This document shows positions 676-39,753 of a stretch of DNA of 64,000 nucleotides, piece by piece. Origin of the DNA: Penicillus capitatus (taxonomy: Eukaryota > Plantae > Chlorophyta); the NCBI GenBank assembly GCA_965649825.1, contig OZ287714.1, positions 1 through 64,000 of the forward strand, written 5' to 3'. The notes beneath the pieces were generated by a model that was given only the letters and a program-made list of their open reading frames with translations, made no database searches and was not told the DNA's origin. The position numbers and the translations under genes were made by a program. Within the stretch, counting starts at the first letter, position 1, and each line of letters starts with the position of its first letter.

Positions 676-3600
676 ATGCAGATCGAGTCAATTCCCTTTC
701 CACGCTATGATGGACGCAGTGACCCTAGGAGATGGGTCCACAAGATGACCACGCTCTTCCGATTGCAGGAAATCGACGACCTCCCAGGGACGCGCGCTGA
801 AATCGCAATCGCGCTGCTGGATGGACCAGCTGCCGATTGGGCAGAGCTCTATTTTGACGCCGCCGCAAACCTGCATGAGCAGTGGGCGGATTGGAGTCAG
901 GCCTTGACCGACCGGTTCGTACGCGAACAAGACCCGGAGCGTGCGCAGGACCTCGTCCGACATGTGTTCCAGAAGCGCGGGGAAACGCTGGTTGCTTACG
1001 CCGAGCGTTTCATGTTGATGTGCACTAGGGCTCGCCCCGCGTTGGACCATGACCGCTATCACAAATATTGGCTGAGGGGGCTGCGCGACGAACGCGCGGC
1101 GGAATATGCATTCACAGTACTTGCCGCGTCGGGTTTGGCGCCGACCTTTGACCACGCTTTCCGCTATGCAAAGCGCGCGACGGAAGCGAAAACAAACGTC
1201 CGTGGACGGGTGGAGACGGACGAAGAAGAAGATGAACCGGAACTGGAGCTGAGACCCTTGAAACGCGGGGCGACGGTCCGCCGAGGGGACGGAGCCCGTC
1301 GACTTGAGAGCTCGAAGCAAAAAACTACAACCATCGTCGCTGAACAACCGGCGGCGGATGACTCCGACGACGAAGAACTCCGCCAACTCCTCGCCGGACT
1401 GACCAGCCTACTCGCAAAGAAGCAAGAGAAGCGGCGAGCGAGACGCGCCGAAGGCAACGCGACCCGCTTTGTCGAATCCGTATCCGAGAGCGCAGACAAT
1501 GCGGATGTCGAAGCAACCGCCAGGATGGCGAATGGGGATGGACCCCCACCCAGTAAGCGACTCCGAGGCGCGTCGGGAAAGAAAGCGCGAAAGCCGCGCA
1601 AAAAACCCGAGCTCGACCGAGAATGGGCGGACTACGCTGCCCAAGCATGGGCCATTCCACTGCGATTCCTGAAAGGACGCAGCAAACGAGAAGTGTACTC
1701 CCAGGTGATTTTGGCACTAAGGGATGCCTTTGGCTTCACGCCGAAGCCGAAGAAAAAGAAAGCCGAGGAAGACCAGCCCTCCGCGTCGGCACCTCCGCCA
1801 CAGACCGACGTGGAAATGGAGCAACCCGCGCCAGCATCGCCTCCTCAGCAAACCGCCCTCGCTCAGAGGCGAGGTGCGAATGAGAAGCGCTGCAAGGTGT
1901 TCGTGGCGGGGCAGTTCGTTGCCAAAGTGATTGTCGACCCAGGATCGTCCCAGAGTATAATGAACAGTGCTTTCGCCAAACAGCATGGCGTGAAACACGC
2001 GACTCCAAGCCGGGGCACCTTGCTGTTGGCCGATGGATCCGTTCAAAAACCCTGGGGACGCACCGACGAGGTGCGCGTCGACGTCGGCGGAGTAGTCGTG
2101 CAGCAGACGTTTAGCGTTTTGCCAACAAGGAATTCTTACGATATCCTCCTCGGCACCGACTGGCTGCGCACCGTCCATGGAAGGGCCAACTTCGACGACG
2201 GGACTTACACCTTTGGTGTATCGAAGCGCATTGCCGTTGTTCCTAGATGGCGCAAGCTTTACTTCGCCAAGGAGCAACCCCGAACTGTGGAAGACGACGA
2301 CGACGCTTCCGACGCAAGCAGCGAGTCAGATATGGCAGCCGCTCTGGAGGAGTTGATTGAACAAATGCAAGCCCTCGCCAGCGAGAGTGAAAGTGAGGGT
2401 GAAAGCGAGAGCGAAGAAGAATGTTTTCTCGTGCTAAGCGACCAGGTACTGGGAGAACTGCATATTAACCCAAGATTGCAGCCTGAGGTGCTTTCGGGTA
2501 TCCGCTCCCTCGTTGGCGAATACGTAGATTGCTTTGCGTTGACCTTTGAAGACATGGTCAGAACGCCTCTGATGCAATTTGAAATCGAATTGCGCCAAGG
2601 AGAAGTCGCGAAGCGCTGCGGGCGCACGCGACGTTTGGCGCCAAAAGAAACCGAATTCGTGAAAGCCCAGATCGATGAGTTACTCAATGCTGGTCTGATC
2701 GTCCCCTGGGAAGAAGCTGCCAGACGATTCGGCTGCCCAAAGCGCAAGGATCGTTGGCTGTCGCCAATAACTATTGCGCCGAAGAAAGACGGTACCTTTC
2801 GTTTCTGTTGTGCCTACCAGAGGCTCAACGACGCCACTATTCCCGACAAGTTCGTTTTGCCACGGGCGGACGACTTACTCGATCGCGTCATGGGTCACGC
2901 ATGGTACTCGGCCCTAGACGGGTTCAGCGGATATTATTCCCTAGGGTTACATCCCGAGTCCGTAATGAAGACGGCTTTCGCTACAAGCTTTGGCGTCTTC
3001 TGTTGGCTCGTTCTCCCCTTTGGGGTGACGAACGGTCCCGCTGCCTACTCACGTTTAGTCGAGCAAGTATATGGCGGATTGGATCGAGTCGGCGTCTTCA
3101 TCGACGACGTCTGTTGTGCACACCAAGACGAGGCCGGCATCGTGGAAGACTTGCGACGCGTGTTCGAACGCTGTCGCGATGGAGGACTCCGTCTGAAGCC
3201 GAAGAAGTGTTTCGTCGGCTATCAAGAGGTCGATTTCCTTGGTCATCGGCTGTGCCCCGACGGAATGCGCATGGACGAAATCAAAGTCGAGAAAATATTG
3301 AAGATGCCTCCTCCCAAGGACAGAAAACAAATGCAATCCCTCTACGGCATGTTTTCGTACTACCGCCGTTTCCTCAAGAACTTCGCTAGCATAAGTGCGC
3401 CGCTGTCGAGCCTCCTGTCGACGCGTCGGGACTTCGAGTGGACTCCCGAGGCCCAAGGGGCACTGGAGGAGTTGAAGAAGCTCCTGGTCGACGGAGCTGT
3501 TCTAGCAGCCGTTGACGAGGACCTCCCTTTCCTGGTCGACACGGATGCTAGCGCGTATGGAGTCGGTGCCGTTCTGTCGCAAGAGCAAAATGGCGAGGAG

Positions 3601-5115
3601 CGACCGATCTACTTCTACTCTCGACTCCTGAAAGACGCTGAGACACGATACTCTACCACGGAGCGAGAGGGACTGGCATTGGTCGTTGGCTTAAAGAAAT
3701 TCCGCGTCTATGTTCTAGGGCGCAAAGTGGTCGCTCGAACTGACCATGCAGCACTGTCGCACATGCTGCGCAAAACAGACCTAACGGGTCGCATTGCCCG
3801 CTGGAAGCTCATCCTCTCCGAGTACGATGTTCATTACGTGACGAGGTCTGGGGAAAGGCACCGCAATGCTGACGGACTGAGTCGCCTGGTCGACGAAGAT
3901 TTGGCGCCGCGACCAGTCAATAACGAGGGAGAATGCGATGAATGCCCTGTTCTCGTGGCCGAAGAGGTTGCTGCTGCGTTCCAAGCTTGTCCAGAGTATG
4001 CAGAAGCCCTCTTGACAGCCAACGAACTAGGCAGTCGTTTCCGGTGGGGTGAGCGCAATCTCTTCTACGAAGACTTAGATGGCCGACGCAGAATTTGCTT
4101 GCTACCAAGCCAGGTCCGCGCGGTCATCTCCGAAGAACATTGCGTTGGGCACTTTTCCGCTGAAATAACCCTGCAAAGATTGAGACAACGCTACTGGTTT
4201 CCAAGGATGCGCAAACAAGTTCACAATGTCGTGAAGACCTGTCAGACCTGCCAGATGTTTGGCTCAAGACCCCCGATTCGAAGCACCCTCCCCATAGCTG
4301 TAGAAGAACCATGGGAGCTGGTTGAGCTGGATACGGTCGTCGGGCTGCCGGCGACACCTCGGAAGGCTGTTGGATTCGTGACAGCGATCGACTGCTTCAC
4401 GGGCTACGTAATAACTGAGGCATTGACGTCCATGGGAGCAGCGAAGACCCTCAAGTTCCTTGTCAATAAAGTCATTTGCGCTTGGGGCGTGCCGCAGAAG
4501 ATCCTGACGGACAACGGGACAGAGTTTCGAGGCGTTTTTGGCGAGACAGTGAAGAACCTGAAGATCGAGCACAAATGGTCTACACCACGTTACCCACGTA
4601 GCCATGGCAAGGTCGAGAACGTGCAGCGTCTCCTACTCGACCGCCTGAGGAAGTGTCCGAACCCGCGAAGCTGGGATGAAAACCTTCCGGCCGCGACCTT
4701 CGCCGTGAACGCGCGTCGAGGCAAGTTCCTGTCACCACTCGAACTTCTTACAGGGGTCGTCCCGAAAAGCCGCACAGAAGTGGATCTGTTGTCCGGCGAA
4801 CCTAGAGGTAGTGCAGAGCCGCTACAATCCGCCCTCGCCGATCGTCTGACGAACATGGCGCTCTGCCGCGAGCAGTTTCGTGACTCGTCTAAGAAGAGCC
4901 GCGAGTCCTGGACCAAGGAGGCTGGTATGCAGCGTATTGATCCCGGAACGGAGGTCCGTGTCTATCGACTTGAAAACCACGGAAAACTCGAGGCGACGTT
5001 CGAGAAGGGTGTCGTGACGTGGTGGGGGAATCAAGGAGCTTGCAAGGTGTTAGTGGGTGGCCGCGTGAAGAGAATGCCGCAGTTCTGTGTGAAGCCGTGG
5101 ATCGCTTCCCAATAA
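676..5115 (+). CDS. Gag-Pol polyprotein (capsid-type Gag, aspartic protease, RT, RNase H, integrase), 1479 aa, intronless and uninterrupted
   Basis: Gag (FPRYDG..W...QKRGETLVAYAERF..WLRGL); protease IVDPGS...ILLGTDWL; RT FRFCCAYQRLN, LPFGVTNGP, FIDD; RNase H VDTDAS..YSTTEREGLA..RTDHAAL; integrase H-H-C-C zinc finger and LDTV/TDNGTEF/GKVEN DDE. Confidence 0.97.
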   Translation: MQIESIPFPRYDGRSDPRRWVHKMTTLFRLQEIDDLPGTRAEIAIALLDGPAADWAELYFDAAANLHEQWADWSQALTDRFVREQDPERAQDLVRHVFQKRGETLVAYAERFMLMCTRARPALDHDRYHKYWLRGLRDERAAEYAFTVLAASGLAPTFDHAFRYAKRATEAKTNVRGRVETDEEEDEPELELRPLKRGATVRRGDGARRLESSKQKTTTIVAEQPAADDSDDEELRQLLAGLTSLLAKKQEKRRARRAEGNATRFVESVSESADNADVEATARMANGDGPPPSKRLRGASGKKARKPRKKPELDREWADYAAQAWAIPLRFLKGRSKREVYSQVILALRDAFGFTPKPKKKKAEEDQPSASAPPPQTDVEMEQPAPASPPQQTALAQRRGANEKRCKVFVAGQFVAKVIVDPGSSQSIMNSAFAKQHGVKHATPSRGTLLLADGSVQKPWGRTDEVRVDVGGVVVQQTFSVLPTRNSYDILLGTDWLRTVHGRANFDDGTYTFGVSKRIAVVPRWRKLYFAKEQPRTVEDDDDASDASSESDMAAALEELIEQMQALASESESEGESESEEECFLVLSDQVLGELHINPRLQPEVLSGIRSLVGEYVDCFALTFEDMVRTPLMQFEIELRQGEVAKRCGRTRRLAPKETEFVKAQIDELLNAGLIVPWEEAARRFGCPKRKDRWLSPITIAPKKDGTFRFCCAYQRLNDATIPDKFVLPRADDLLDRVMGHAWYSALDGFSGYYSLGLHPESVMKTAFATSFGVFCWLVLPFGVTNGPAAYSRLVEQVYGGLDRVGVFIDDVCCAHQDEAGIVEDLRRVFERCRDGGLRLKPKKCFVGYQEVDFLGHRLCPDGMRMDEIKVEKILKMPPPKDRKQMQSLYGMFSYYRRFLKNFASISAPLSSLLSTRRDFEWTPEAQGALEELKKLLVDGAVLAAVDEDLPFLVDTDASAYGVGAVLSQEQNGEERPIYFYSRLLKDAETRYSTTEREGLALVVGLKKFRVYVLGRKVVARTDHAALSHMLRKTDLTGRIARWKLILSEYDVHYVTRSGERHRNADGLSRLVDEDLAPRPVNNEGECDECPVLVAEEVAAAFQACPEYAEALLTANELGSRFRWGERNLFYEDLDGRRRICLLPSQVRAVISEEHCVGHFSAEITLQRLRQRYWFPRMRKQVHNVVKTCQTCQMFGSRPPIRSTLPIAVEEPWELVELDTVVGLPATPRKAVGFVTAIDCFTGYVITEALTSMGAAKTLKFLVNKVICAWGVPQKILTDNGTEFRGVFGETVKNLKIEHKWSTPRYPRSHGKVENVQRLLLDRLRKCPNPRSWDENLPAATFAVNARRGKFLSPLELLTGVVPKSRTEVDLLSGEPRGSAEPLQSALADRLTNMALCREQFRDSSKKSRESWTKEAGMQRIDPGTEVRVYRLENHGKLEATFEKGVVTWWGNQGACKVLVGGRVKRMPQFCVKPWIASQ

Positions 5116-25272: not shown

Positions 25273-25745
25273 CTACACTGTGGAAGAGGTGCATTGCTTG
25301 ACATTATTCTTGTCATCGCCTGGCTCTGGCTGATGCGTCATGTACTCGATGAGATCCGAAATGTGCTCCTCCAACATATCCAAGCGATGATCCATCGCTC
25401 TCACTGTAGACATAGAAAATAAGATCACATAACGTCATCCACGATGCTGAGGGGAGAAACACTTTTTGTGACGAGCCCTTCGTGAGCATCAGAGACCTGC
25501 GATTGCTGGCATACAACAGAGACTGAGGTCAAGCCTGGGTTACGGTGATGCTGTGACGTACGATTTGGTCAAGAAGCGCCTCGACTAAAGAGGTGATGTT
25601 ATTTGTCTGGGGAATGATGCCAAGACCGTGTTTCTTCCAAATATCCATGTCGTCCTGTTGACCATACATCGATGCGCCACATCTGCGTTCGATGCCTCAC
25701 CAGCCACTCGGTATCGTCCGTTGTCTGTGCAGATGTATCGGTCAT
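25273..25745 (-). CDS. HSBP1-like small coiled-coil protein
   Basis: Exons giving ITSLVEALLDQI ... AMDHRLDMLEEHISDLIEYM, resembling heat-shock-factor-binding protein 1; exon junctions approximate. Confidence 0.55.
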
Positions 25746-25868
25746 TTTCGCAACTGCAGAGAGACACGGGAGAAAGAATGTTTATAGAAGGGGGTACACA
25801 ACAAACCGTCTGACCAAAGCGTCGAGGCACTCGTTGGACGAGGATGTGCCTATTCGTATATGACGGTT

Positions 25869-26239
25869 ATGAAAGTGCCCGTCGGCGATTTGAAGACGTT
25901 CATTGCGAAGGCGAGACTTGTCCAGCTGTACCGTGACTGTTGGCGTGAGGTGCAGAAAGCGCCCGAAAATACCAGACGTGAGGGGATGGTGGTGGTGGTT
26001 GGATGTTTGTGGCAATGTGTGTAGGGGATCTCGCCGAGTACGTGCGTTCGCAGTTTCGCGACGCCGATCTGCCCAGGACACCCTCCGCTCTACAGTTTCA
26101 GATCGAATCGGGAAGGCAGGAGCTCAAAAACTATCGTGCTTCGCTGGAAAGGACGCAACATAATCTCAAATACTTCCACGACGTCGACCCGCCCAAGCTT
26201 CTGTTTCACAAAAAGGTTATCAAGAGGAAGCCGCGATGA
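25869..26239 (+). CDS. LYR-motif protein (LYRM2-like)
   Basis: Two exons: MKVPVGDLKTFIAKARLVQLYRDCWREVQKAPENTR|RDLAEYVRSQFR...QIESGRQELK; stop TGA at 26237-26239. Confidence 0.8.
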
Positions 26240-29200
26240 AGCTGTCACATCAGTTTCTCGAACGCAAGAACCAGCAGGGATTATCGGGTCCGTGTCCCTT
26301 TGCCATGTCCGATGTGACATCTCACGGATTCGGCTGATTGAAGGGGACAGATCGCGCAAGGGGAGTGTCGATACAGCGATCGTCGATCTCATCGAGGAAA
26401 TGAATCGGCATCCTCTGATGTACACGACGAGCAGCTGTTCTGGAAGAGTGTCGCTTTTTGAAGAGGATCTGATGGGCTGTGTGGGAAGGAAGGGAGGGGA
26501 GTGGATCTACGTGTCCCATCAGGAGCCGGAATGGAATGAACTGTACGACGCAATGCAGAGATGGCGGGAAGGGGATGGGACGAAAAGGGAAGGGAAAGAC
26601 AAAAGATGGAACTTCCGTTTTGAACCGTTCATCGTGGCATGCGAATGCGGAACGCTGGAGACGGCACGGATGCTTGTGCAGATCGGCAGGGAAGCAGGAT
26701 TCCGTGAATCGGGCATCGTGCTGGGAAAGGATAGAATCCAGGCCACTGTTCGTTCCGCGGCGAGAACAGAGATTCCGGTGTGTGAGCACGGCATCATGCT
26801 GATGGCAGAGTCCTCTTGGGATGTGCTGTTGCGCATTGTGCGTGAGAAGTTTCGAAAGAATGGAGAGAAGATCGATGCTTTCCGGCATCTCTTTCATACG
26901 ACCTTTGCTTCGCAAACGGGACCATCCCTAGAAGCCACGCCAGACGACCGACGGCCTGCATACGAGGACGGATCCCTACGATGGCAGACAATGGCACCAA
27001 GACATGCCTCCGTTTGTCCATTCACACGGAGTGCAGAGATGCATGATGGACTGTTTCGAAGGGATTGGAGCGATGGGGACACAGCGTTTGCGCGGCGAAG
27101 AGTTCGGTGCTCATCTTTGGAGGATATGGTGGGAAGAGAGGCCATCAGCGACTCGACGATATGCTTCTCTACCATCCAGCCACCAACACTCTCACGGAGC
27201 AGACAGTCACCGGTGATATTCCTTCTCCAAGAATGGGTCATGCATCTGTCGCCGTGGGTGAGACGCGCGCACGTCTTGGGGAATCGATGAAGGATGAAAT
27301 GCACGACAGGGGACGCTGTGTACATTCTGGGAGGCAGGACGCATCCAGGCAACGCTCTGAGTGACGTCTATCGAGTGGATGTCGACAACTGGACAGCTGC
27401 TCAGCTGCCGGCATCGTTTCCTGCGCGATTCCGTCACAGCGCCTGTGTGTACGGAGAGGCAAAGATCGTTGTGTTTGGCGGATGCACATCCGAAGGACCT
27501 ATGAATGACGTCTGGATGATGGATGCCAAGCAACAGGAGATCTTTACACCGATCAAGACTCAAGGCCCGAGTCCAATGCCACGCATGAGTCACGGAGCAT
27601 GTGTACAGGGAGATTGGCTCTTTGTGCACGGAGGGTTTGCAGACTATGGCCGTGTGTACAGCGATCTTTTCAAACTGAATCTGAAGACGTTTTCGTGGGA
27701 AGCCGTCTGTATGGATCCGTTTCGCCTGCCGGAGTGCTTCTCGCATTCTTTGGTGGCCCTGGATGAAAACATTCTTGCCGTCATCGGCGGCTGTGGTCAG
27801 GCCGAACCTGAGAGAATCACTCTCTTCGATCCGGGCAGTAAAAGTGTGAGGGTGTTGAGGACAGAGATCCCTACCGAGGCAGCATGGGTGCCCATACGGC
27901 AGGCGGCTCTGGTGCTTGAAGACCGACTGTTTGTCGTCGGCGGGGGTGCTTTTTGTTTCAGTTTCGGATCTGCTTTCAGCTCCTCCTTCTCGATGGAACG
28001 CTCTCACCTTGTTTTGCTCTTTAAATCTGGCACGGCGAGGAAAGTCGATATTGATGTGCCATCTGCGAGGAGTGAGAGAGTCGTGGGGATTGTTACGAAA
28101 AAGACCGAAGCCAAGAGGGTGAAGGACACACTCAAGGTCCTCAACTGGCTGGATCCTGCGTACAAGAGCACGGTCTTGGAGATGGGGAACAGAATTGCTT
28201 TTCCCGTTCTGGCGGCCCACAGCCAATCCGTGGATGCGCTCCACACCGTCGCTTCGCCCAGAGCCTGGGCAGAGGAGAAGAAGATCGATCGCGACGCCGT
28301 GTATCAGCTGTATGAATGGCTGTGCAATGGAATGGCCACGGTGCAGTGCATGGATTTCGTTCGTTCTAGTGCAGCGAGCACACTCTCCCCTGCCAAGCGG
28401 CTAAGACAGATGATGGCATCTCGATTGAAGGCACTCGATGTGAAAGACGCCGAGACGTTGATGAGAGAGCTCCCAGAAAAATGGGAGAAGTTGGGAGACA
28501 TGATGCTGTTGCCTGCAGAGAGCATGTGCTCTCCCTTCTGGACAAAAGGTTTTGGAAACGATCTGTGGAAAGACGTGGCCGAAGTGCTGGAAGGCCGTCG
28601 ACTCGCCCGGCAAGCCACCATCCGCGCATCCGGTATAAGATGCCTTCTGCTGCGACCCAGGCGAGTAGCTGTGTGGTTTTAGAGACAAGAGATGCGCGGG
28701 TGGTATTGCTCTATGGCGAAGACGGTTGGGTCACACACAAAGAGAACGGCATCTCTTTTCAGCTGGATGTCACAAAGTGTATGTTCAGTTCGGGAAACGT
28801 CTCGGAAAGAATGAGAATGAGTGAGCTGAGCTGCCACGGTGAAACAATCGTAGATCTCTATGCCGGCATTGGATACTATACACTGCCTCTCCTCAAGCAA
28901 GGCTGTGCGGAGAAGGTTCGCATCCTTGTGTCGTTTATGACGAGATCTATGCAGCTGCTGTGAAGGTGATTGCCTGCGAATGGAATCGACATGCTGTGAA
29001 GGCTCTGAAACTGAATCTACGGGCGAACGGCGTTGCGGATCGTTGCACCGTCCTCTTCGGCGACAGTCGTCGGATAGCTCCCGAATGTGTTGCTGATCGA
29101 GTGATTCTGGGATTGCTGCCATCCAGCAAAGGCGGCTGGAAGACAGCCCTGACGTGCTTGAAAGCGACAGGTGGTTGGCTACACCTTCACGAGAACGTCA

Positions 29201-30449
29201 CTGATCGAGATGAGGAGAGCTGGATGCAAGACACGCTCAACGAACTGAGAACGATGTCCGTCGAGATGCAAAGGAACTGGAGTATATCCGTGGAGCACCG
29301 TGAACACGTGAAGTGGTATGCCCCACACATCCGACACGTGGTGCTGGACATCCGCTGCCAAGTGCCAACAGCGAACACCGATCTCCCATTGTCCTCGCCG
29401 AGAGCGAACAGCATCTCCATCATCGACGCTCCGTCTGCAGATCGATTCTGGGCAGAGATCGTAGCCAAGAGACGTCCTGTCCTGATCCAACGTACGTCCC
29501 CTCTTCCACGGAGATCGTGCTTGGAAAGGGGACGGGGCTGTGTGTCAGATATGGATGTGGGGTGTGCTGTCGGTCAGTGGTCTGCTGACTATCTGATGGG
29601 GCACGCCGAGGCGAAAGAGACGCGTGTGAGTGTCCACGTTTGCCCAGATGCGAAAGGAAGGATGCGTTTCGTTCCACGTAACTTTGAGTTTCACACCATG
29701 TCCTTCTCGGAACTCATCCAGCGATGCACCTCTGCTCACCGTCTCTCTCCTCTGATCCAGCCAGGAGAGCACTATTATCTCAGAAGCATCGGTCAGAATC
29801 CGAGGAAGGTACACGCGGCGCCTCGCTTGCGCAACATCTCCCCTGCGATTCTGTCCCGCAGGAGAGGTCATCGATTCACGCAGCCTTCCCGCAACTGGCA
29901 CAGGAAGTGAAGCTTCCTTTGTGGATCGCCAAGGAGCGTGTCTTCTCCACCGTGCTGCGCGTCAGTTCGCCGCGGCTGCAGCTGTGGACCCACTTCGATG
30001 TGATGGACAATCTTCTCATCCACATCACGGGGAGAAAACGCGTCAGGATGTGGCCGCCGTCTGACGATGCCCGTCTCTATGTGACGGGATCGAGTTCGGA
30101 AGTGACAGATGTCGAGCATCCCGATCCCACACAGTATCCAAACTTCAAACCGCCGACCCTCGAGTTCGATCTCCTTCCTGGCGATGTCCTGTACATTCCT
30201 GCCCTCTGGTTCCATCACGTCACATCAGAGAGCTTCGCGGTCTCCGTCAATCTTTTCTTCCGTCACCTCGCCGATGAGACCTACGATCCCAAGGATCTCT
30301 ACGGAAACAGAGATCCATTGCCAGTGCAAGAGGCAACGGCGTTTATGGATCGCATCCTGAAGCTTCTCCATTCCCTGCCTCCCGATTTTCGACAGTTCTA
30401 TGGACAGAGACTGCAAAAGCAATTCGCAAATGGACTCGATGGTTGTTGA
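26236..30449 (+). CDS. Wybutosine-pathway fusion protein TYW3-Kelch-TYW2(Trm12)-TYW5(JmjC)
   Basis: TYW3: DRSRKGSVD...YTTSSCSGR; Kelch repeats (LIFGGYGG, YILGGR, VFGG, VHGG); TYW2: GWVTHKENGI...CMFSSGN...VDLYAGIGYYT, DRVILGLLPSS, VKWYAPHIRHVVLD; TYW5: YYLRSIG.NPRK, LWTHFDVMDN, GDVLYIPALWFHHV. All junctions splice in frame and there is no stop between TYW2 and JmjC. Confidence 0.88.
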
Positions 30450-30667
30450 GTCTGATGTGACATTTAACGAATGCTTCTTCTGGACGAATTGAACAAGAAA
30501 GGACATTGAGTCGTTTCGTTGACCCGTCACTTCCTGTACGCGCAAGTCGTCAGTTTCTCTTCATACTTTCGCGTTTCAGGTAGACACCGTGGCGTCACTC
30601 GTTACGCGTCACCCGTTTCCATGCAGGTTCTCTTTTTTGCGGCGTCTGTTGGACGAAAATGCGGCCG

Positions 30668-31670
30668 ATGCGAAGGGAGCAATGCGGTTATTGGCAGAGA
30701 CGGGGCACTTGTAAATTTGGAGACCAGTCCGTCACGACTGCGTCCCCTAACCGACGCTTCACCCGGTCGTCCTCTTCTAGGTGCAGGTACCTACACGATG
30801 GCCAGCATTCCGAGAGGGGCACGCGCCTCGATCGCTATACAGACCACGGCGTGTCGTTGCGCCAAGGTGGCTGACACACTCTCTGTAAAGTGTGAGAAAG
30901 ATGCCTGACAGCAATTCATGTGTATAGGCAGTCGAGTGTGTAACATCTATGCCAGGACTGGATCCTGTCCGTACGGTAGCCAATGCAAATATGATCATCA
31001 CATGACGCGTCTCCTAGACGGCGGCAACAAGACGCCCATGAACGGCATGGGCCGTCCTCATACTCAGTTTCCCCAAAAGCATCGACGCATGCGCAGTCAT
31101 GAGATGCGCCGATTCAACACCAAGTCACTTTATCAAGATCCCGGACAGATGGGCAGTTCAAAGGGATGGAGAAGTACCGGGAGTGAGACATCCCCACAAC
31201 CACCGTGTACAGATACCTCACCGCGCAGCACGAATGATGCAAATGGGACTTTTAGACAGAGCTGCAGTCCGCAAAGCACGCAACCGACTTCGCATACATC
31301 GCCCTTGCCTCATGTGGAAGCATCTGTGACGTGCTTTGGCGACAACGGGGGATACGCATCACAAGAGGGGGTGCATGGAAGTCAGCATTTAGCAGATTTG
31401 TTTCATCGGACACTGGAGCAGAGCGGAACGGGTTTTGCAGCGGCGGCGGCGGCGGCGCATCTGTACCGTCCTGAGTACTTTTCCTCGTGGCCATGCGTTC
31501 CAAGTCAATGGTACGCTGCGGGCGTACCCAATGAAGTCATGCAGATGAGGCTTGATAAAGAAAGAGACATCAAGATACTGAAAACACCAACAGTACCTTC
31601 ACATTTACTCAAGCCCTTCAGAGAACAGGAAGGAGCTTTTCTGCACGTTCGACCAACAACCATGCCATGA
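30668..31670 (+). CDS. Tandem CCCH zinc-finger protein
   Basis: CGYWQRRGTCKFGDQ|CRYLH and CNIYARTGSCPYGSQCKYDH, followed by a low-complexity tail. Confidence 0.72.
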
Positions 31671-32896
31671 TCGTACGACAGATTTGATATGGTCTGTTGG
31701 TTTGTTCGCTGCAGTACTGAGATAGATAGACGGATAGTGAAAGCGTGGTCTTTGCTGACGTGTCTTCTCTTGGCGATTGTAGAGATCATCGGTACGCTAT
31801 TCGATCGAGGGCTGGGTTCTGACATTGCTAGCTGGACGATTTAAGAGCGCGTGACATCATCACGAGGAGGAGGGGGGGCTGTTTCACACATTCTCTCACT
31901 CAAGTTTACGTTAAACTAACTCATCAAAGACAGCACTGTCATTCAATTGGGCGTGTGCTCTACAGCTCTTATTCATTTTTGCGATGAATGCCGTTAGAAT
32001 GAATGTTCAGAAAGGCCCTTGGAAAATGGCGAAACTGACTCCAATGACAATGCCGTTTTTAGCTTTCACATAGAGCCAGTATACCGTTTTCGTGAAATTC
32101 AATTTTTTCGATTTGCAGTCAGTCTTGGTGGCCATGTACTATTTCTGATGCCGTTTCCACTTGTATCCAACAGAGAGACAGATGGACAGACAGCGGACGC
32201 AATAAAGCATATCTTCCCTCAGCTCATGTGCCTTTACACGATCTCTCTGTCCTTGTAAAGCATATGATGAATACACATCATTCTTGACATCAGTCAGAGC
32301 CACGGCTTCTGCCAATGAAGGTGGAAGGACGCACAACGGTGCCACACTTTAACGTTTCGCAAAGATGGCATAGGGTCTCGGAGTCTTATTTCACTGAGTT
32401 TATCAGAATAAAGATGTCTTCCTGATATACGAAGGGGGCAAACCATCATTCACCAAACCTCTCGCTCGCATGGATGTTGAAACTGAACTTAAAAACTCAA
32501 GTCATCGAAATGGCGCATTCATCCGAAATGCCAATCAGATGGTGTGATGGAAGGCATGATGCTGCGCGTCCGGATCGGTGATGTGACGGACAGACAGATG
32601 TTGATGAGACGTGACGCGGCAAAGAAACTGTAAGAAAGGGACAGGGGTACCCACTGCATCGCTTGCACCGCCGTCAACCGCAAACAGGGTATGTGCTCGT
32701 TCGATGCGTGTTGAATTCTGCGTGCTCTCGTCGAGAAAGCGGATGTCCTTTCGAGTTCTATGTATCGTCTGCGAAACACCTGATGCGTCACGTTGTCTCT
32801 CTGCTTAGACCTCTCGAATGGTCTAGATCTTGTTCCTCTGGCAAAATGCTCGATGCCGGGACAAAAGAGTCAATGGAGAAATGAGTGAGTGAGATG

Positions 32897-39665: not shown

Positions 39666-39753
39666 GCCTCGGTGGCTCAGTTGGTTAGAGCGTCGGTCTC
39701 ATAGCACAAAGTGGGAAATCCGGAGGTCGTGAGTTCGATCCTCACCCGGGGCA
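39666..39753 (+). tRNA. tRNA-Met(CAT), elongator type, with a 14-nt intron at 39704-39717
   Basis: GCCTCGG acceptor paired with CCGGGGC-A; D arm GCTCAGTTGGTTAGAGC; anticodon loop CTCATA^A with U31-U39 typical of elongator Met; T loop GTTCGATC; followed by a TTTTT Pol III terminator. Confidence 0.93.

Follow-up and report, generated by a model that had tools for sequence, protein, structure and literature searches.

A candidate bicistronic locus in the green alga Penicillus capitatus: a LYR-motif gene and a wybutosine-pathway fusion gene joined by a conserved 4-nucleotide stop/start overlap

Introduction

Polycistronic nuclear mRNAs in green algae have been established only between 2021 and 2025, and in a handful of model species. 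Gallaher et al. (2021) reported 87 loci in Chlamydomonas and 173 in Chromochloris that are exclusively polycistronic (PMC7896298), and Duenas et al. (2025) curated 36 Chlamydomonas and 43 Auxenochlorella bicistrons (PMC11892635). In the latter collection, the first open reading frame (ORF1) has a median length of 357 nucleotides (nt) in Chlamydomonas and 291 nt in Auxenochlorella, the median inter-ORF distances are 183 and 40 nt, respectively, the 5' untranslated regions (5'UTRs) are short, and AUG triplets are depleted ahead of the second ORF (ORF2), the median ratio of observed to expected AUGs being 0 in Auxenochlorella ORF1 (PMC11892635). Mutagenesis in vivo pointed to leaky scanning rather than reinitiation as the route to ORF2 (PMC11892635). 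Here we analyze a locus of Penicillus capitatus, located in a stretch of 64,000 nt (contig OZ287714.1, positions 1 to 64,000 of the forward strand, assembly GCA_965649825.1; hereafter the window), in which the stop codon of a small gene encoding a LYR-family protein (LYR, ORF1) overlaps the start codon of a large gene encoding a predicted fusion protein of the wybutosine pathway (TYW, ORF2). This LYR/TYW pair may be regarded as a well-supported further example of an established kind of locus, in which two proteins are made from one mRNA, and the candidate can be recognized from sequence alone.

LYR/TYW resembles the published green-algal bicistrons in its small conserved ORF1 (324 nt, compared with medians of 291-357 nt), large ORF2, tiny inter-ORF distance, lack of any AUG before ORF2, scant room for a 5'UTR, and colinearity in other chlorophyte classes. 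It also shares with them an ORF1 of the LYR-motif class, which the authors singled out as frequent, and the pairing of proteins with apparently unrelated functions. The two LYR proteins found among the loci of Duenas et al. are partnered with a COA4-like protein and a sugar-phosphate translocator, whereas TYW, wybutosine, Kelch, and PF02676 are absent from those datasets (PMC11892635). The LYR/TYW pairing is apparently unreported in the literature searched. The published loci have a spacer (median 40 nt in Auxenochlorella) where LYR/TYW has a 4-nt overlap; however, Dataset S1 lists an inter-ORF length of 0 for 5 of the 43 Auxenochlorella bicistrons, CDC26/TTM3 among them (PMC11892635), so that abutting or overlapping ORFs are not new. 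CDC26-TTM3, found in land plants and green algae, is likewise a two-ORF mRNA of deep conservation; its ORF1 is small, and its ORF2 is presumably translated by ribosomes that scan past the first ORF, although it encodes other proteins. CDC26-TTM3 has been validated experimentally, as have other published green-algal bicistrons; LYR/TYW is a candidate predicted from sequence.

Stop/start junctions of the AUGA or UAAUG type are known from caliciviruses, influenza B segment 7, and some fungal viruses. The calicivirus VP1/VP2 (AUGA or UAAUG) and influenza B M1/BM2 (UAAUG) junctions share with LYR/TYW the overlap itself, the AUGA geometry, and a long upstream ORF; they differ in possessing a termination upstream ribosome-binding site (TURBS), comprising a UGGGA motif that pairs with helix 26 of 18S rRNA and flanking structure, which is absent from LYR/TYW, a cellular nuclear pair. 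A vertebrate parallel is the microprotein encoded by the upstream ORF of MIEF1, where one mRNA carries a LYR-motif mitochondrial protein first and an unrelated larger protein second; it involves a different LYR subfamily, partner gene, and lineage, and is not known to have a stop/start overlap.

Results

The stop codon of LYR overlaps the start codon of TYW

The original prediction held that the stop codon of a LYRM2-like gene overlaps the start codon of a TYW3-containing gene, and the letters of the window confirm it: positions 26225-26245 read aggaagccgcgATGAagctgt, in which ATG 26236-26238 and TGA 26237-26239 overlap (cgATGA), giving a 4-nt overlap of the two ORFs. The ATG at 26236 was also correctly proposed as the true TYW start, because the spliced LYR mRNA contains no other ATG and the next in-frame methionine lies beyond the conserved KGSVD motif, leaving 26236 as the only usable start. 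The conserved peptide GDRSRKGSVD follows one GT-AG intron exactly as had been read. Both ORFs are real genes, as judged from Pfam matches and from orthologues of each. The coordinates of the locus are collected in Table 1.

Table 1. Position and structure of the features that make up the LYR/TYW locus in the window
Feature	Position	Strand	Description
Divergent intergenic region	25746..25859	.	114 nt from the minus-strand ATG (25745-25743) to the first LYR ATG; sole promoter/5'UTR space of the predicted LYR-TYW unit
LYR gene exon 1	25869..25977	+	MKVPVGDLKTFIAKARLVQLYRDCWREVQKAPENTR + 1 nt; alternative in-frame ATG 25860; orthologues in L001, L003, L004, and L016
LYR intron	25978..26024	+	47 nt, GTGAGG...GTGTAG, GT-AG, phase 1; 3 ATGs inside
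LYR gene exon 2	26025..26239	+	conserved C-terminal tail YFHDVDPPKLLFHKKVIKRKPR; stop TGA 26237-26239
ATGA stop/start overlap	26236..26239	+	A of the last LYR Arg codon + TG of the stop = TYW ATG
TYW fusion exon 1	26236..26287	+	MKLSHQFLERKNQQGLS + 1 nt; changes vs L001 mostly synonymous
TYW intron 1	26288..26343	+	56 nt, GTCCGT...TTGAAG, GT-AG, phase 1; 2-nt indel vs L001
TYW exons 2-8	26344-27011, 27062-27257, 27310-28632, 28683-28915, 28966-29491, 29549-29808, 29862-30449	+	open gene model, stop TGA 30447-30449

The overlap is conserved across saturated divergence

Conservation of the junction in related algae, which had been proposed as a check, was found in three lineages represented in public assemblies: the window's own lineage with L001 and L002 (contigs of ENA assembly ERZ26696514), a second lineage with L003 and L004 (Logan assemblies), and a third with L016. 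The 107-codon LYR ORF, the ATGA junction, and both intron positions recur in all three. L001/L002 are the closest relatives (89% LYR identity), and in both reading frames most of their differences from the window affect the third base of a codon; the indels in the two introns have lengths not divisible by three. L003/L004 show 62-63% LYR and 46-47% TYW3 identity to the window and a guanine-cytosine (GC) content of ~40%, compared with ~52% in the window; L016 shows 67% LYR identity and 48.6% GC. The junction reads cgATGA in L001/L002, L003, and L004, and agATGA in L016, where the last arginine codon is AGA and not CGA.

Between lineages, LYR amino acid identity ranges from 53 to 67%. Only 10-22% of four-fold degenerate sites are identical between the window's lineage and L003/L004 or L016, and synonymous sites are therefore saturated; the higher value for L003 compared with L016 (57-65%) probably stems from a shared bias toward A/T-ending codons. 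The ATGA overlap is thus not a product of chance and has been kept across saturated divergence. Substitutions in both ORFs, the LYR tail included, show coding periodicity across lineages. In the last 27 codons of LYR, which extend past the end of the Bryopsis homolog, identity between the window and L003 at codon positions 1, 2, and 3 is 0.63, 0.85, and 0.26, respectively; this periodicity indicates that the tail is translated right up to the TGA.

The LYR protein and the four-orthologue alignment, when compared with an index of 5.8 billion proteins, returned a single match (P0001), and an exhaustive search of representatives with the LYR protein gave eight matches, of which the sole named homolog is a 78-amino-acid (aa) hypothetical protein of Bryopsis sp. 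KO-2023. Its gene (L010, 6001-6488) has a 251-nt intron at the same position as in the window and ends in TAA, 150 nt upstream of a TYW3-Kelch fusion gene on the same strand. In Volvox africanus BSDZ01000078.1 (L005), LYR exons lie at ~3129-3244 (E = 1e-5 with the LYR orthologue profile), 3607-3669, and 4261-4311 (MPASPPQSLRHFIYRSQVIKLYREYIR...), on the same strand and ~700 nt upstream of the TYW3 ATG at 5002; the record lists no gene there. The position of the LYR intron is constant in all orthologues, in Bryopsis, and in Volvox. No LYR gene was found upstream of TYW3-Kelch-TYW2 in L006-L009 or in L014/L015. The best named TYW3 relatives come from Volvox, Haematococcus, and Gonium, and together with Bryopsis they place the alga with the chlorophytes. 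The GC values of the window and of L003/L004 coincide with those published for two Bryopsidales, Ostreobium (52.4%) and Caulerpa (40.4%), respectively, a circumstantial agreement.

Several further matches concern the LYR family. In L014 (JGI 3300022562, positions 1616-1648) and L015, the TYW start still reads aagATGAat, and the frame that closes on this TGA encodes ...DLF*RGYKKHKR*; but for an internal stop, it is similar to the LYR tail ...LFHQKEYKRKPR*, and a LYR ORF that has since been lost may have left it behind. The LYR homologs in L011, L012, and L013 were rejected as linked pairs, as TYW is not adjacent to them (the L011 contig ends, L012 carries a convergent WD40 gene, and L013 an unrelated ORF). 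In L013 (JGI 3300012782), a LYRM2-like ORF at 35-265 is followed after 85 nt by a same-strand ORF of more than 315 aa without a Pfam match (351-1295); the contig is short and apparently intron-free, and it may represent another LYR-first bicistron in an unrelated organism. P0040, a 964-aa protein recorded under Rangifer tarandus platyrhynchus, contains 15 separate stretches matching the LYR query (E = 2e-23) and could be a tandem array of LYR units, a mis-assembly of such units, or contamination of the reindeer assembly.

The spliced region between the LYR and TYW starts is free of AUGs

The spliced LYR ORF contains no internal ATG in any frame in five of five orthologues (window, L001, L003, L004, and L016). 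As a background, other coding 321-nt stretches of the window contain on average 6.2 ATGs and none of 187 lacks them, and only 0.24% of 318-nt windows on the plus strand are ATG-free. The LYR intron, in contrast, holds ATGs in L001 (2) as it does in the window. In Bryopsis, the 387 nt of spliced RNA between the LYR and TYW ATGs are likewise ATG-free, whereas the LYR intron contains ATGs.

Upstream ATGs differ among orthologues. L003 (1647-1655) and L004 (1056-1064) carry a mini-ORF of two codons, ATG ATA TGA, which overlaps the LYR start codon through an ATGA of the same form (catgatATGAaa); in its stead, the window and L001 have an in-frame ATG that precedes the common LYR start by 9 or 6 nt.

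Characteristics of the LYR protein

LYR encodes a 107-aa product (MKVPVGDLKTFIAKARLVQLYRDCW...KRKPR), which matches Pfam Complex1_LYR (PF05347) with a score of 36 bits (cut-off, 24.8; E = 6.6e-9). The LYR tripeptide occupies residues 20-22 and QF residues 46-47, as the family requires. A 1-nt indel in the intron compared with L001 identifies the intron as non-coding. A profile search of the PDB gave weak matches to NDUFA6 and LYRM4, and comparison of the orthologue profile with provisional reference sequences gave 54 bits for human LYRM2, 33 for LYRM4, 22 for LYRM9, 20 for LYRM5, and 15 for LYRM7. A resemblance of this LYR-family protein to the LYRM2 subfamily is plausible as a lead.

Characteristics of the TYW fusion protein

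The TYW gene comprises eight exons and seven GT-AG introns of 50-57 nt; its ORF of 3846 nt encodes 1281 aa. Pfam domains follow one another along the protein: TYW3 (residues 15-201, E = 2e-46 to 2.2e-45), a Kelch propeller (246-517, E = 3.7e-86), the TYW2 N-terminal domain (TYW2_N, TYW2_N_2; 686-761, E = 1.3e-08), the TRM5/TYW2 methyltransferase domain (764-905, E = 1.9e-34), and a C-terminal TYW5-like Cupin_8/JmjC domain (984-1223, E = 1.9e-39). By its domain content, the gene encodes a TYW3-Kelch-TYW2-JmjC fusion with putative wybutosine-pathway activities in one polypeptide. The same architecture was found in L001, L003, Bryopsis, and Volvox. The short first exon (17 residues) carries an F-x-x-RK motif common to the N-termini of the Bryopsis, Volvox, L003, L014, and L016 proteins, and Bryopsis has an intron at the identical position, directly before GDKSRKGSVD.

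Discussion

From these features we infer a single LYR-TYW transcript, the position of its transcription start site (TSS), and leaky scanning as the route to ORF2. We hold with moderate confidence that one mRNA serves both genes, LYR being translated from the cap-proximal AUG and the TYW fusion by 40S subunits that scan past it. One capped mRNA would start within the ~115-nt divergent region (25746-25859) and would carry first the 107-codon LYR ORF and then the 1281-codon TYW ORF. At most ~114-123 nt are available for promoter and 5'UTR together, and the 5'UTR must be short, since only 114 nt separate the ATG of the divergent gene from the first LYR ATG; given plus-strand ATGs at 25778 and 25844 within this region, the TSS probably lies no more than ~25 nt from the LYR start. 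Part of the scanning 40S subunits would initiate at the LYR AUG, very near the cap, and the remainder would scan past it; because the spliced LYR ORF contains no other AUG in any frame, the next one that they would meet is the TYW AUG at 26236. The 4-nt overlap would be kept because selection at the protein level acts on the LYR tail (...KRKPR) and the position of the TYW AUG is fixed, which sufficiently explains the overlap, and prokaryote-style coupling is not needed for it. The locus thus has the traits of green-algal bicistrons, namely a small ORF1, no AUG before ORF2, little room for a 5'UTR, and colinearity in other chlorophytes. The statement of the original prediction that nuclear polycistronic mRNAs with a short upstream ORF occur in green algae agrees with published loci (PMC7896298, PMC11892635). 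A scan of JGI metagenomes with the LYR alignment revealed no spliced contigs containing both ORFs.

Several observations weigh against leaky scanning on a shared mRNA. Shuffling of synonymous codons yields an ATG-free LYR ORF with P = 0.13 for the window, 0.18 for L001, 0.70 for L003, and 0.83 for L004, and hence codon-level avoidance of ATG alone is not significant; the AUG-free state arises mainly at the amino acid level (no methionine and few ATG-prone dipeptides). An internal TYW promoter within LYR would likewise favor an AUG-free 3' part of LYR. As for start contexts, ORF1 shows no clear weakness relative to ORF2: the LYR start has G at -3 in all orthologues but L016, which has C, and TT, AT, or AG at -1/-2, while the TYW start has A or G at -3 and CG or AG at -1/-2, and +4 is A or C at both starts. 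The gap between LYR and TYW3 in Volvox africanus holds several ATGs and a TGTAA, and these may be separate genes there. In Bryopsis, LYR and TYW are annotated as two separate genes, with a TGTAA 25 nt before the TYW ATG.

The last two observations are compatible with two independent, overlapping transcription units, with the TYW TSS inside LYR, the LYR poly(A) site inside TYW, and the overlap as a by-product of crowding. Overlapping transcription occurs in compacted eukaryotic genomes, and the locus is crowded, with 114 nt between the divergent starts, introns of 47-57 nt, and a zf-CCCH gene a few hundred nt past TYW. We nevertheless consider this arrangement possible but rather unlikely. The order of the genes persists in the Bryopsis locus, which is not compact (a 251-nt LYR intron and an upstream spacer of ~600 nt) and where the spacer between the ORFs is still AUG-free. 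The AUG-free zone begins exactly at the LYR AUG, spans exon 1, and excludes the intron, and crowding alone is not expected to fix an overlap to the nucleotide across saturated divergence. Neither TGTAA, the green-algal poly(A) signal, nor AATAAA occurs on the plus strand at 25700-30709, which includes the 4.4 kb past the LYR stop, a weak argument as only ~2 would be expected and TGTAA may not be the signal of this alga.

Termination-reinitiation on one bicistronic mRNA, in which the 40S subunit would stay on after the LYR UGA and restart at the overlapping AUG as the main route to ORF2, appears improbable to us. The exact ATGA has been kept in three lineages even though the arginine codon shifts from CGA to AGA, leaky scanning alone does not require an overlap, and post-termination 40S subunits are able to restart at nearby AUGs, as discussed by Duenas et al. 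(PMC11892635). The overlap is also explained by constraint on the LYR tail together with a fixed TYW AUG, however, and in Bryopsis a 150-nt spacer stands in its place. Moreover, ORF1 has 107 codons, and without a TURBS-type tether reinitiation rapidly becomes less efficient as the upstream ORF lengthens; in each of the five orthologues, the final 120 nt of ORF1 lack both the TURBS-like UGGGA and GGGA. No conserved RNA structure was found at the junction, where the RNAalifold consensus reaches only -5.98 kcal/mol with an unfavorable covariation term of +0.64. In vivo tests in Auxenochlorella also contradict reinitiation as the main route (PMC11892635). The "bacterial-style" coupling suggested in the original prediction therefore found no support, with no TURBS-like UGGGA, no conserved structure, and leaky scanning rather than reinitiation operating in green algae (PMC11892635). 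We likewise doubt that the ATGA has been kept through translational coupling, with 40S subunits handed over after a 107-codon cellular ORF without a TURBS-like tether; if true, this would amount to prokaryote-like coupling acting on a nuclear mRNA of a eukaryote and conserved throughout an order of green algae.

A single LYR-TYW fusion protein, produced by -1 ribosomal frameshifting or by alternative splicing at the junction, is highly improbable: the TYW frame is indeed -1 relative to LYR, but no slippery heptamer precedes the stop in any orthologue (G AAG CCG CGA TGA; C AAA CCA CGA TGA), no conserved structure lies downstream, no in-phase GT donor joins LYR to TYW exon 2 without crossing the stop, and the Bryopsis ORFs are separated by TAA and the 150-nt spacer. 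A spliced-leader trans-spliced operon was rejected, as the coding sequences overlap and leave no intercistronic space, and an Rfam scan of the window found no spliced-leader RNA.

As a candidate, the locus extends the pattern of nuclear bicistrons to apparently ulvophyte (Bryopsidales-like) algae. The locus also offers a natural series, with the ORFs overlapping by 4 nt, lying 150 nt apart in Bryopsis, and ~700 nt apart in Volvox, which could be used to test the effects of inter-ORF distance, AUG depletion, and ORF1 length on the ratio of ORF1 to ORF2 output. It carries a warning for annotation, since gene callers miss or mis-join such pairs, as exemplified by the unannotated LYR gene in Volvox africanus. 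The proposal of the original prediction that the LYR protein is linked with tRNA modification in function found no support, and most algal bicistrons pair unrelated proteins; the locus reveals neither a new mechanism nor a functional connection of mitochondrial LYR proteins to the synthesis of wybutosine.

Neighboring genes and other features of the window

Upstream of LYR, a divergent gene on the minus strand (25529-25745) starts at 25745 with MTDTSAQTTDDTEWL, followed by a GTGAGG intron, and has no Pfam match; MTDTSAQTTDDTEWL is kept in L001 with one synonymous change. Also upstream, PP2C, TALE-homeobox, and DEAD-box genes are conserved in L001. A zf-CCCH gene follows TYW within a few hundred nt in the window (30600-31700, plus strand), L001 (15066-15797), and L003 (6608-7531), so that downstream synteny is also conserved. 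Elsewhere in the window, an unbroken 1479-aa ORF on the plus strand (676-5115) encodes gag, protease, reverse transcriptase, RNase H, and integrase of an apparently intact Ty3/gypsy-type long terminal repeat retrotransposon. The sole Rfam match in the window is an 88-nt tRNA gene on the plus strand (39666-39753), which is longer than the tRNA model (71 positions) and probably has an intron.

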